A stretch of DNA of 64,000 nt from Anthoceros angustus (GCA_010909165.1 VJWM01000011.1:1426001-1490000); one strand, 5' to 3'. Positions 36,590 through 42,018 are shown, counted from the stretch's first letter. A program made the numbers and translations. The notes: generated from the letters alone by a model not told the origin.

Positions 36590-37790
36590 ATGGGTCAAGG
36601 TGCCCGCTTCCCAGTTGAGCTCGCCGCCTAAAGCCTGAACCTGGGAGGCGAGGAGGCTCGAAGGGTGGGAGATGGGCGTCGTAACGGCTGGATCTGTGAG
36701 CGTTATGTGAGCAGGGGAAGCTTTCGGAGGCCGTTGGAGCCCTGGAATCTGTTGCGCAGACAGACTTTTGTTCCACAGGATTTGTGGGGGTGCGCGTGTG
36801 ATTGTTCGGCCTCGGGCTGGCCCAGACCACGGATGCCTTCAGGTTAAGTGGGAGCGATGGTCTCCTGGCTTATTAGCTTCACCTGGATGGTTAGCTGTTT
36901 GCCGGAGCTGAATTCCGTGAGCTGAGGCAACTTGTTTGTTGGTGAACGTGTATTCAAAATGCGGGGGAACTGGAAGATGCACGCAGGATCCCTGCAGGCT
37001 TTTTCATTTGGCGCTGCCTTGGAATCTGGCAGAAAAGTGCACAGTGATGTGGTGCAGAGTGGCATTCGTCCTGACTTGTTTGTTGCGGATTGCCTGGTGG
37101 ACATGTATATCTCGGTATCTGCCCTGATATCTGGGTATGCAAAATGTGGTGAGTTGAAAGATGCCCGCCAGGTGTTTGACACCATGGCCACAAAGGATGT
37201 GGTGACATGGAATGCCCTGATGGCTTGGTATGCAAATGTGGTGAACTGAACGATGCACGCCTGGTTTTTGACCGCATGGCTACATAGGATGTGGTGACAT
37301 GGAATGCCCTGATTGCTTGGTATGCATATGTAGCAAGGAGTCGGCCAACAGGTTATTTTTCTGTGTCGACAATTAACTGGAGCAAGAAGGCCTCGTTTTG
37401 ACCAACCATGCTATTTCTGCTTCCCTTCTGAAGGCCTGTGCAAGCACGGGTGCCTTACAGAAGGACAGGCAGCAGCACTCACAGATTGTGGAAAGAGGAC
37501 TGCTGGATAACGTTCTGGTTGGAAACTGCCTAGTGGACATGTATGCCAAATGTGGTGAACTGTAAGGTGCACGCCAGGTTTTTTGACAGCATGGCCACAA
37601 AGGATGTGGTGACATGGACGGTGCTGATTGCTGGGTATGCAGAATGTGGTGAACTGAAAGATGCAGGCTAGGTGTTTGACAGCATGAACATAAAGAATGT
37701 GGTGACATGGACTGCCCCCATTGCTGGGTATGCACAGCATGGACTCAGCCTAGAGGCTCTTGTTCCGTATGGACAACTTGAGCAGGCCCT
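36590..37790 (+). pseudogene. Degenerate PLS-PPR gene fragment, head-to-head with ATP synthase epsilon
   Basis: GAGATGGGCGTCGTAACGGCT...GGGGAAGCTTTCGGAGGCCGTTGGAGCCCTGGAATC matches 2018-2100. Then GRKVHSDVVQSGIRPDLFVADCLVDMY and several S-like units (GYAKCGELKDARQVFDTMATKDVVTWNAL) with stops and frameshifts. Confidence 0.82.
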
Positions 37791-38689
37791 GGGAGTAGAG
37801 TGGCCAGTGACAGCGACAATGTCCCAGTGACAGCGATAATGTCTCAAGCAGGACAAGCAATAGCAATAGCCATGTGTAAGCCAGGTCGCACCGGGACAGG
37901 GCCATGTAATAGCAGGACAAGGACTGTGTTTGACAAGGACAAGGAACAAAACAAAACAAAACACTAAAACAGTGTTTGACATGTGCACAGAAGAGCATTA
38001 CAGTAAATCCTGGAAAGCCAAGCGAATGCTGGAGACCCGGAGGGTGTGTTGATAGGCAGTACATGGTACTGCGTTGCTGTGACACGTGACATATGTGCAC
38101 AAGTGCCCTCCTCCTACTGGAGTCAGTTTTGGCAGTTTGGATGATCCTGGACAGTGAAGATTGCTGGGTATGCAGAATGTGGTGAACTGAAAGATGCAGG
38201 CTAGGTGTTTGACAGCATGAACATAAAGAATGTGGTGACATGGACTGCCCCCATTGCTGGGTATGCACAGCATGGACTCAGCCTAGAGGCTCTTGTTCCG
38301 TATGGACAACTTGAGCAGGCCCTGGGAGTAGAGTGGCCAGTGACAGCGACAATGTCCCAGTGACAGCGATAATGTCTCAAGCAGGACAATAGCAATAGCC
38401 ATGTGTAAGCCAGGTCGCACCGGGACAGGGCCATGTAATAGCAGGACAAGGACTGTGTTTGACAAGGACAAGGAACAAAACAAAACAAAACACTAAAACA
38501 GTGTTTGACATGTGCACAGAAGAGCATTACAGTAAATCCTGGAAAGCCAAGCGAATGCTGGAGACCCGGAGGGTGTGTTGATAGGCAGTACATGGTACTG
38601 CGTTGCTGTGACACGTGACATATGTGCACAAGTGCCCTCCTCCTACTGGAGTCAGTTTTGGCAGTTTGGATGATCCTGGACAGTGAAGA
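37628..38689. repeat. Tandem duplication, 533 bp + 529 bp, covering the PPR-fragment end and the lipocalin 3' end
   Basis: 37628-38160 is almost identical to 38161-38689 (one 4-bp indel seen). Confidence 0.9.
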
Positions 38690-40108
38690 GGAAAGGATTA
38701 TCGCAGCTAAAGCTGAATCCGAATTCCTCTGCCTTCGCTAACAGGGAGTTGGTCACATCTGGGGACAATGTCGGGGTTCTGGACAGGATGAAGAGGCCGG
38801 TGTCTACCTCCCCTTCGGACAACTGGGTGCACGAGAAGACGACGGCAGCCTGGTAGCCCTGGCTTGCCTTCCCGGTGATGGCCACAACCCAGTATGGTCC
38901 TGACGTGAGCGGCTGTCCAGGGATGGGTAAAAAGACGTTGAGCTTGGCGGGATCCGCGACACTCTGCTCTGCAAATCCAGTGAGGGCGAAGCGCTGCGAC
39001 GGGCTGGAATTGTCCGCTGCCACCAGTTCTTCGGCAACATCCAGGAGCTTTTGGCTCCCCAAAGCGATCTCCACGTCCTGCAAAGTGATGGCCTCTTCTT
39101 GAGCCCAGATCTGGGTACCGGCGAGGGTTAGCAAGAAGGCTGCTTCCGCGTTGCTCGGAGATCCAGCCAGCAGCTTGTTGGCGACCTGCGGCACCCCAAG
39201 TCATGTGAGAAGAGCACTCACTACAGCTGAAACACAGTTGGAGAACAGGAGCTGCGGCGTACCGAGATAATCTGCTTTCGGGCATGTGAGATTTTCTCCA
39301 CAGTCTTCAGAGTTCTTATCACTCCAGTTTCCAAACCCTTGGCAATGTCGGAGAACTCCTTCAAGCTCCCGGCCTTGCTCCCGATTGCCTGGCTCAGCGC
39401 CCCGGCCTGGATGGTAGCTGCCTTCACCTTCTCCGACAGGGGACTGACCAGGTCTTGCAAGGACGCCAGCGCCGCGGAAATGTTGGCAACCGCGGAAGCA
39501 AGAGTCTGGGCGTCCTGGCCGACGAGGCCAGATCTCACCTTTTTCACCTGCGCAACGGCCTGGGAGATGGGCCCGACTGGACCAACCGCGGAGCACAGTG
39601 CGCGGGCTGCAGAACAGATCTCCTGCAGGCTGGCCTGGATCAACGCCACTCCCTGAGAAGCTATCGGGCCCAACACCTGCAAGAGATCACCCACTCCAAG
39701 TCGTCAATCGACATGCTTGCAACTGAACCGAAACAAGGTCTCGCACCTCAAGGTCTCACACGAGGAACCCAATACGTCTTGAATTCGCCAATGTCGTACC
39801 TGAAAGCCCGAATTGACGACGGTGACATTAGCGCCCTGGGTGGGCGTGGGGGCCTCGGCCAGGGTGTAGTTGGCGAAGATGCAGACCAAGCCGGTCTCGG
39901 TGCCCAGCTTGAACCTGGCCGTGCTGCCGATCTCGTACCACTTCCCGACGTACGCAGAGAGATCGAAGCCCCGCACGGTCGGGGGATTCGGGCACGTAGT
40001 GGCCGTGAATGAGGCCGAGCAGTTGGAGGCCGCATAGCCTTCCCCAGGTGCGGCCAGCAGCGCCAGGAATGCAAGGACAGGCAGCCAAGCGGCCAGTGTT
40101 CTCGCCAT
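38652..40108 (-). CDS. Secreted ApoD/Lazarillo-like lipocalin with a ~200-aa helical insertion (exons 40108-39800, 39676-39263, 39185-38652; ~418 aa)
   Basis: Signal peptide MARTLAAWLPVLAFLALLAAPGEG; CPNPPTVRGFDLSAYVGKWYEIG (SCR1); CIFANYTL; then the Ala/Leu/Ser-rich insert; then PAKLNV, PYWVVAI, AVVFSC, LFILSRTPTL (SCR3), ...HPNC. All three exons are in phase 0 with GT-AG introns. Confidence 0.85.
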
Positions 40109-40660: not shown

Positions 40661-41695
40661 AAACGGAACTCCCTCGTTTTTCCGCAGTGTGGTTTCCTCG
40701 TGCGCGTGTGCGCGTGCAACGAGGAAACGTTGTGTTCCAGTTTAGGCGTACGCCACGTGGCTGTGGCAAGCCACCGCGGTCGTTTTATGGTGGCCATTGC
40801 GTACGCCACGTGGCTTAGGCAAGCCACCGCGGCCGTTTTATGGTGGCCATTTTCAGGGTTCGTCTTGGAGCAGGGTGGGAGCAGGGTTTAGGGCAGGGGC
40901 GAGGAATGCAGGTTTGGGCGGGGCAGCTAGGGGCGAGGCACGCACGCTGGGAAGGGCGACCAGGGGCAAGCGTCGAGGTGAGTCAAACCACAATGGCTCT
41001 TTGTTTTCAAGTTGCAAGGATTGAAATATTTTCAAGCAACATACACGTTTGGAAGAGAAAGAGTGTATGTCACCTTTGGTGCTTGGCCGCTCTTGGTTAG
41101 GGCGCCTTTGGGGCTTGGCCCCTCTTGGTTAGGGCGCCAAAGCGGACATTGTACGGGTTTCACATGAAAAAAAATGCCCCATCCCCTCTATCCTCTTTGG
41201 TATGCCATAACAATGCGTAGGCATCTTAAAGAATATACCATTGATTCCTGTACGGAGGTGCACCCTCACAACACATGCTGAAATGTTTGCTTTGGCGCCC
41301 TAACCAAGAGCGGCCAAGCACCAAAGGGGACACACTCTTTCTCTTCCAAACGTGTGTGTGCTTGAAAATGTTTCAATCCTTGCAATTGGAAAACAAAGAG
41401 CCACTGTGGTTTGACAGACCTCGACGCCTGCCTGCCTTGCCCCTGGTCACCCCACCCAGCGTGCATGCCTCGCCCCTAGCTGCCCTGCCCAGCCTGCGTT
41501 CCTCGCCCTTGCCCTAAACCCTGCTCCCACCATGCTACAAGATGAACCCTAAAAACAGCCACCACAAAACAGCCTCGGTGGCTTGCCACAGGCACGTGGC
41601 GTACGCCTAAACTGGAACACAACGTCTGAAAAAAAATTTCCTTGTTGCGCGCATGAAGAAACCACACTGCGTAGAAAAAAGGCGGTTCCGTTTGT
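40661..41695. repeat. Long imperfect inverted repeat (arms about 40661-41150 and 41281-41695; spacer about 130 bp)
   Basis: For example GTTGTGTTCCAGTTTAGGCGTACGCCACGTG (~40729) pairs with CACGTGGCGTACGCCTAAACTGGAACACAAC (~41593), and TTGGTGCTTGGCCGCTCTTGGTTAGGGCGCC (~41076) pairs with GGCGCCCTAACCAAGAGCGGCCAAGCACCAA (41294). Confidence 0.9.
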
Positions 41696-42018
41696 GGGTA
41701 CACAACTAGGGTGTGAACCCTAACTATGTTCCGTTTGTGTGTACACAACTAGGTGTGAACCCTAACTATGTTCCGTTTGTGTGTACACAACTAGGTGTGA
41801 ACCCTAACTATGTTCCGTTTGTGTGTACACAACTAGGTGTGAACCCTAATTATGTTCCGTTTGTGTGTACACAACTAGGTGTGAACCGTAACTATGTTCC
41901 ATTTGTGTGTACACAACTAGGTGTGAACCCTAACTATGTTCGGTTTGTGTGTACACAACTAGGTGTGAACCCTAACTATGTTCCGTTTGTGCGGATCACA
42001 ATTAGGGTTCACACCCTA
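41686..42018. repeat. 42-bp minisatellite, 7 copies, closed by an inverted copy of its first 15 bp
   Basis: Unit GGTGTGAACCCTAACTATGTTCCGTTTGTGTGTACACAACTA. GGGTGTGAACCCTAA (41709-41723) and TTAGGGTTCACACCC (42002-42016) are perfect reverse complements, each with an outer TA. Confidence 0.93.

Follow-up and report, generated by a model that had tools for sequence, protein, structure and literature searches.

Lipocalins are viewed as compact barrels of a single domain, in which the short loops at the open end tune the specificity, a concept that also forms the basis of anticalin engineering. One of these loops, between strands C and D, sits at the open end of the calyx. In this study, we analyzed a stretch of 64,000 nucleotides of Anthoceros angustus DNA (the window), for which an earlier note had described a lipocalin barrel interrupted by a helical insert of about 200 amino acids between the strands ANVTVVNSGFQ and RFALTGFAEQ. 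The locus thus raises the question whether a whole folded domain is indeed located within a single loop of one lipocalin barrel, and what such a domain could contribute to the protein.

By translating the exons singly, a three-exon gene on the minus strand was read from the sequence at 40108..38652, with canonical GT..AG ends at both introns and a predicted joined protein of 418 aa. The following features were assigned:

40108..39800, minus strand: exon 1, 103 codons, ending in the strand ...VTVVNSGFQ
39800..40108, minus strand: contents of exon 1, i.e. an N-terminus resembling a signal peptide (about codons 1-27), CPNPPT, G55-K-W57, and barrel strands A-C
Exon 1 codons 30, 39, and 76, minus strand: cysteines of exon 1
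39677..39799, minus strand: intron 1, 123 nt, with GT at 39799-39798 and AG at 39678-39677
39676..39263, minus strand: exon 2, exactly 138 codons, phase 0-0, encoding arms 1 and 2 and most of arm 3 of the predicted bundle
39616..39593, minus strand: two cysteines spaced C-x6-C (exon 2 codons 21 and 28) within the first insert helix, corresponding to C124/C131 of the orthologue P0006
39380..39412, minus strand: IQ....LSQ..G, a conserved motif (exon 2 codons 89-99) where arm 2 ends and turns into arm 3
39186..39262, minus strand: intron 2, 77 nt, with GT at 39262-39261 and AG at 39187-39186
39185..38655 plus stop codon at 38654-38652, minus strand: exon 3, 177 codons
38994..39185, minus strand: exon 3 codons 1-64, end of arm 3 and arm 4 of the predicted bundle
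38652..38993, minus strand: exon 3 codons 65-177 and stop codon, strands D-H, the C-terminal helix, strand I, and LFILSR(136)TP
Exon 3 codons 119, 161, and 175, minus strand: cysteines of exon 3

Intron 1 is located exactly at the boundary between strand C and the insert, and intron 2 falls within the insert, between helices 4 and 5 of the structural model described below. The strand RFALTGFAEQ begins at exon 3 codon 65 (38993). The insert comprises the 138 codons of exon 2 and 64 codons of exon 3, in total 202 codons of Ala/Ser/Leu-rich, helical sequence, in line with the extent given in the earlier note; the C-x6-C pair which that note had reported is likewise present, and the example peptide given there is encoded by exon 2. 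A paralogue of the lipocalin gene was not found within the 64-kb window.

For evidence on splicing, contigs from two sequencing runs, X1 and X2, were used, which we presume (a guess) to be RNA runs. Run X1 bears the same species label and holds 72% of the sampled words, while X2 stems from a relative that is ~92-93% identical. Both exon joints are present in contigs of X1 and X2 (39674|39798 and 39183|39261; cut +2, GT..AG, minus strand), and in X2 a single contig of 1694 nt spans exons 3, 2, and 1 with both introns removed. Compared with this contig, 47 of the 414 positions of exon 2 differ (11% nucleotide divergence) without any indel, and for the pieces including UTR 28 of 385 positions differ in exon 1 and 53 of 761 in exon 3. 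Contigs lacking the introns at the exact splice sites are expected of mRNA and thereby support the gene model. The gene is real, spliced, and, the runs being presumed RNA, expressed. Retention of exon 2, on which the earlier note had made its reading depend, is what these transcript-like contigs display; a joint skipping exon 2 was not seen in the contigs of X1 and X2, a type of data in which a rare isoform of this kind would stay hidden.

Both ends of the predicted protein carry lipocalin sequence. Residues 75-158 of exon 3 match positions 62-137 of the Pfam profile Lipocalin_2 (PF08212) with 25.2 bits, the gathering cut-off being 24, and residues 48-85 of exon 1 match positions 1-35 of the same profile with 15.1 bits; the Pfam scan of exon 2 gave no match above threshold. 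ApoD (2hzq) matches exon 1 with an E-value of 4e-6, and Blc matches exon 3 weakly. The G-x-W of SCR1, a strand A motif, is found in exon 1 as G55-K-W57, and the Arg of SCR3, situated near the end of strand H, in exon 3 within LFILSR136TP, which aligns with LWILSRTP of Blc. SCR2 (TDY), the motif of the F-G loop, is partly kept: the window protein reads ...AITGK....GY..., with the Thr and a downstream Tyr present and the Asp absent, and the family consensus around this position is G....GY.AALVYSC. The N-terminus resembles a signal peptide by its n/h/c look, as judged by eye.

Judged by these motifs and profile matches, the window protein is a member of the ApoD/Blc-type lipocalin subgroup. With ApoD, Blc, and Lazarillo-type lipocalins it shares CPxPP, the GxW of SCR1, the LSRTP of SCR3, the cysteine positions of the ApoD disulfides, and the predicted eight-stranded barrel followed by a C-terminal helix. 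In contrast to these proteins, SCR2 is only partly kept, and two extra cysteines in the insert as well as an extra N- and C-terminal pair are present. The other difference concerns the C-D hairpin, which has 3-10 residues in the insert-less relatives, whereas about 200 residues, predicted to form a folded four-helix bundle, take this position in the window family.

The same architecture was found in other streptophytes. In a HMMER scan, exon 3 matched 62 proteins, among which 16 are full-length (370-534 aa) and carry the match at their C-terminus. The full-length members have a common layout consisting of a signal-like N-terminus, CPxPPT, GKWYEIGSTA.FK, the V.NSG strand, and a helical stretch of ~200 residues with the motifs C..AR..C and IQ....LSQ..G; the insert is followed by G.A.QN...GKL.V, PYWI, GY.AALVYSC, LFILSRTP, and DCD.PF..TVQ...C. 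The named sources are the charophytes Chara braunii, Closterium, and Mesotaenium endlicherianum, the liverworts Marchantia, Riccia, and Calypogeia, and among vascular plants Selaginella, Diphasiastrum, the fern Ceratopteris richardii, and Ginkgo biloba. None of the named members carries an annotation beyond 'hypothetical' or 'lipocalin domain-containing'. In two liverworts and two lycophytes, the gene (L001, L002, L003, L004) has no introns, compared to two in the window gene, and the protein including the insert is encoded by an uninterrupted single ORF, namely in Marchantia paleacea (1311 nt), M. polymorpha (MPTK1_2g17690, 1314 nt), Selaginella moellendorffii (1605 nt), and Diphasiastrum complanatum (1314 nt). 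Since these orthologues need no splicing, the architecture cannot be an annotation artefact. The gene range in Ceratopteris includes ~600 nt of non-coding sequence. A tree calculated from the barrel only is unresolved around the insert-bearing proteins; a single clade of these proteins is neither rejected (AU p 0.43) nor proven. Word searches with the family alignment and with P0007 gave only 3-4 matches, swamped by low-complexity candidates, and therefore say little about the size of the family.

Several proteins deviating from the common layout were noticed. In Chara braunii, the full-length copy P0053 (GBG75484.1) has a neighboring paralogue of 291 aa, P0058 (GBG75481.1), with only ~47 insert residues, corresponding to the last arm; this short paralogue is sister to the full-length copy (support 100/99) and may be a natural short form or reflect an annotation gap. 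In the Ginkgo protein Gb_35276 (P0015), ~75 residues of arms 1-2 are absent. The protein P0033 of Closterium sp. NIES-65 (CAI5971409.1, 1321 aa) contains three tandem split-lipocalin units followed by a Usp (universal stress protein) domain and probably represents the fusion of a tandem array. Outside plants, the C-terminal half of the barrel is matched best by giant insect proteins from Lepidoptera and Schistocerca (P0002, P0008, P0016, P0028, and P0031; 1360-3464 aa) with many lipocalin domains, ~18 in Leptosia nina. The presence of the insert in these insect proteins was considered and rejected, as Pfam shows arrays of ordinary contiguous lipocalin domains.

The position and the conservation of the insert were analyzed with a family HMM built without the window rows. 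Exon 1 matches HMM positions 10-105 with 113 bits, exon 2 positions 107-246 with 50.2 bits, and exon 3 positions 249-418 with 147 bits. The three exons are thus collinear and abutting on the family HMM, and the match of the insert is far beyond chance, as 300 shuffled sequences of exon 2 reached 0.8 bits on average and 8.4 bits at maximum. The length of the insert is 194-236 aa in most family members. Between two Marchantia species (dS ~1), barrel and insert have dN/dS values of 0.059 and 0.063, respectively, showing that the insert is constrained as strongly as the barrel. Within the insert, conservation scores are highest in the proximal halves of arms 1 and 2 (0.47 and 0.50), compared to 0.35-0.39 for the rest of the insert and 0.53-0.56 for the barrel. 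Exon 2 is composed of 17% Ala, 12% Ser, and 10% Leu, and across the family the inserts are rich in Ala, Ser, Leu, Val, and Gly, with few aromatic or charged residues; most inserts carry N-glycosylation sequons. For 18-residue segments, the hydrophobic moment in the insert helices is up to 0.53, compared to 0.27-0.33 for shuffled sequences. The 13 land-plant members examined all have the C-x6-C pair, which is incomplete or absent in algal members and therefore not essential to the fold. Cysteines at i and i+7 in one helix are too distant for an intrahelical disulfide. An internal duplication of arms 1-2 as arms 3-4 received no support, the hhalign probability being 9.6%.

For structure prediction, the closest named orthologue, P0006 of Diphasiastrum (~35% identical overall to the window protein), was folded with AF2, using the family alignment with the window exons as separate rows as input. 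The model reached a pLDDT of 88.1 and a pTM of 0.85 and consists of strands A, B, and C, six helices (residues 107-133, 139-163, 172-214, 220-246, 253-265, and 269-316), strands D-H, a helix, and strand I. The window exons map residue for residue onto this model. In Foldseek, the model aligns with ApoD structures with TM scores of 0.83-0.85 (2hzr: TM 0.85, rmsd 2.3 Å, 394 alignment columns spanning the insert). As the alignment to whole ApoD crosses the insert, the two halves close into one barrel in the model, in agreement with the placement of the insert at the C-D position of a single ApoD-like barrel proposed before.

Folded alone, the insert reached a pLDDT of 90.8. In the model, the six helices form four arms of ~45-57 residues each, and the bundle leaves and rejoins the barrel at the C-D position. 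The insert in the C-D hairpin is, as predicted by these models, a folded bundle of four antiparallel helices that comprises ~200 residues and is roughly 65-70 Å long. Exon 2, encoding arms 1 and 2 and most of arm 3, is therefore not a structural unit, and its skipping would break the bundle. From the order of the helices rather than from coordinates, the LSQ..G turn between arms 2 and 3 is expected at the barrel-proximal end of the bundle. How the bundle is oriented over the pocket is likewise suggested only by helix order and the high pTM.

The best structural match of the insert is the designed single-chain four-helix bundle Maquette-3 (6z0c; Z 17.4, rmsd 2.6 Å, 197 of 199 residues), which resembles it in overall fold and length and has no sequence relationship to it. 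Natural fold matches have Z-scores of at most 12.8, and the tool used warns that long unrelated helical bundles reach ~13. These natural four-helix bundles, such as PMEI 1x8z, the TorS sensor, and YicC, are also without sequence relationship to the insert, and the shared fold shows no shared function.

Relatives of the bundle itself were searched for in several ways. The homologue search with the insert alone, which had been suggested together with the first description of the locus, yielded no specific relative by word search with exon 2, by insert profile, or by insert fold. In detail, exon 2 used by itself in a word search among candidates of 76-241 aa revealed no stand-alone relative, and the insert profile gave only compositional matches among PDB sequences (designed coiled coils, chemoreceptors, SNAREs, and similar proteins). 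Scanning 18 inserts with Pfam returned sub-threshold coiled-coil families, with one of the 18 matching ApoLp-III or Apolipoprotein at E<0.1. Foldseek with the insert against PDB found nothing at E<=0.001, and searches of the ESM Atlas by shape and by features led to ApoD-like barrels or generic helical matches and to no cluster with both parts. In the searchable literature, neither a description of a lipocalin with a helical insertion nor one of the insert of these genes was found.

Among known plant lipocalins, TIL, CHL, and the lipocalin domain of VDE have the same barrel, and AtTIL (8wb2) and VDE (3cqn) are among the fold matches of P0006; none of the three has the bundle. TIL is compact (~190 aa) and without signal peptide, and in CHL and VDE extensions flank the barrel, with no domain inside a loop (general knowledge and 10.1101/2025.03.13.638958). 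The 'seedless plants-specific lipocalins' (SLL) were introduced as a third plant lipocalin clade, predicted to be secreted and to have a Blc-like domain; they occur in charophytes and bryophytes, are rare in vascular plants, and their function is given as unknown (10.1101/2025.03.13.638958). The text of this preprint does not mention the insert. The window family is probably this SLL clade, matched by description and taxa: its taxonomic spread corresponds to that of SLL, a likeness drawn from the published description of the clade, which includes the Physcomitrium genes Pp3c11_15530 and Pp3c1_13830. Unlike SLL as described, the window family also has a member in the seed plant Ginkgo and one in a fern.

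We conclude that the window gene encodes a new structural variant of the lipocalin fold within a catalogued but uncharacterised streptophyte family. The architecture had been called unfamiliar in the earlier note, which holds insofar as no searchable paper describing the insert was found, and does not hold in the sense of uniqueness, because a streptophyte family shares it with the window gene. A whole folded domain that occupies one open-end loop, and that strong purifying selection has maintained from before the origin of land plants, would illustrate how nature inserts a domain at a ligand entrance, and the functionally blank third plant lipocalin clade would gain a concrete structural feature to test. 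As MPTK1_2g17690 of M. polymorpha is intronless, constructs with and without the insert are easy to build.

With respect to function, the reading that we prefer, and to which we give about an even chance, is that of an extracellular carrier of small hydrophobic ligands with the bundle as a rigid, rim-mounted stalk whose conserved base is located at the pocket entrance. The protein would act in the apoplast or at the cell surface, with the barrel retaining the ligand pocket. Secretion of the window protein is suggested by its signal-like N-terminus, its even cysteine count, and the sequons. The bundle would not be a flexible linker; it would stand as a rigid stalk on the rim of the barrel, and its barrel-proximal end, i.e. 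helix 1 with the C-x6-C pair and the IQ....LSQ..G turn, the most conserved part, would form part of the pocket entrance and could set access to the pocket or its selectivity. The long, less conserved, Ala/Ser-rich shaft with its N-glycosylation sequons may serve as a spacer or docking surface.

A more far-reaching version of this carrier reading, which we regard as a long shot, holds that bundle and calyx are one machine in which the conserved base gates or continues the pocket. The family would then constitute an ancient class of its own, consisting of extracellular two-domain carriers of lipids or signals, older than the split of Chara, Zygnematophyceae, and land plants, kept up to ferns and Ginkgo, and lost in flowering plants, with a ligand tied to a trait of these lineages, for example precursors of the extracellular matrix or the cuticle, or a signal in reproduction.

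An unlikely competitor of the stalk reading is a bundle behaving like an exchangeable apolipoprotein, which would be closed in solution and open onto a lipid or hydrophobic surface (membrane, cuticle, or lipid droplet), thereby bringing the pocket there for loading or unloading. The up-and-down amphipathic helix bundle and the lipid-carrier context resemble apoLp-III (PF07464) and apoA-I/A-IV/E (PF01442), and the raised hydrophobic moment of the insert helices fits this reading, although amphipathicity is built into any helical bundle. Sub-threshold Pfam hits among the inserts (ApoLp-III with a best E-value of 5e-4, Apolipoprotein A1/A4/E with 0.013) and the elongated soluble ClyA-type pore formers AhlB, Hbl-B, and MakE among the insert fold matches point in the same direction, but each of them falls short either of the curated cut-off or of the Z of ~13 that unrelated long helical bundles reach. 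Furthermore, the insert is Ala/Ser/Gly-rich with few charges, in contrast to the Lys/Glu-rich class-A helices of general knowledge, and inserted within another domain, and its high pLDDT and tight packing of small residues suggest a stable bundle. Membership in the two exchangeable apolipoprotein families was rejected, since the best match (P0009) scored 16.9 bits against a cut-off of 36.3, and exon 2 of the window gene gave no match to either family. Of the earlier proposal that the insert is a helical bundle or an apolipoprotein-like domain, the first part is borne out by the confident AF2 bundle, and the second fails as a family assignment because the hits remain far below the Pfam cut-offs.

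Improbable to a similar degree is an independent docking or oligomerisation module without any role at the pocket, which would bind an apoplastic enzyme or wall polymer like PMEI does, or assemble into higher-order bundles, on an otherwise ordinary barrel. In PMEI-type bundles, four cysteines are conserved and form disulfides. Among natural proteins, the pectin methylesterase inhibitor of Arabidopsis (1x8z) belongs to the best fold matches (Z 12.0, rmsd 2.3 Å, 121 residues), and the shaft evolves faster than the base, as docking surfaces may; oligomerisation of ApoD has also been reported (cited in 10.1101/2025.03.13.638958). On the other hand, the insert is related in sequence neither to PMEI nor to any other family, a loop at the mouth of the pocket would be an odd site for a module unrelated to the pocket, and the most conserved part of the insert is the end that probably adjoins the barrel. 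As a family assignment, PMEI was rejected: the insert has no Pfam match, matches at the level of the fold only, and contains a single C-x6-C pair.

Binding of a cofactor or pigment (tetrapyrrole, bilin, or carotenoid) by the core of the bundle, alone or together with the calyx, appears very improbable. It would agree with the haem-binding maquettes 6z0c, 5vju, and 8d9p as best structural matches, with the structural proximity of the barrel to bilin-binding sandercyanin, BBP, and haem-bound AtTIL (8wb2), and with the position of both i, i+7 cysteines on the same face of helix 1. However, the maquettes simply represent long four-helix bundles in idealised form, the family consensus shows no evident conserved His or Met ligands, and the cysteine pair is absent in algal members.

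A low-complexity, largely disordered linker, as the biased composition and the lack of a Pfam domain could suggest, is effectively excluded by a pLDDT of 90.8 alone and 88 in context, the dN/dS of 0.063, the length of 194-236 aa kept in most members, and an exon 2 free of indels relative to X2 despite 11% nucleotide divergence. Finally, a gene-model artefact, with exon 2 outside the mature mRNA or with separate genes or halves misjoined, could appeal to the phase 0-0 exon, skippable without frameshift, and to the RNA nature of X1 and X2 being a guess, but is effectively refuted by contigs joining exons 1, 2, and 3 at exact GT..AG sites in two species, by half-barrel, insert, and half-barrel in one intronless ORF in four orthologues, and by the 50 bits of exon 2 at the expected place of the family profile.

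The sequence adjacent to the gene showed further features. Downstream, a tandem duplication was found at window positions 37615-38157 and 38148-38686 (529-533 bp, 99-100% identity), which could be a recent duplication or an assembly artefact; its second copy overlaps about the last 11 lipocalin codons and the whole 3′ UTR, and both copies carry PPR-like ORF fragments on the plus strand. Upstream, at ~650 bp from the ATG, a foldback is located at window positions 40750-41600, consisting of nested inverted repeats with arms of up to 118 nt and 85-91% complementarity and resembling a MITE or foldback element. A 53-bp sequence is tandemly repeated twice at 40746-40851. At window positions 41685-42006, a 42-bp tandem repeat is present in 7.6 copies with 95% identity, one frame of which gives the repeated peptide …NPNYVPFVCTQLGV….
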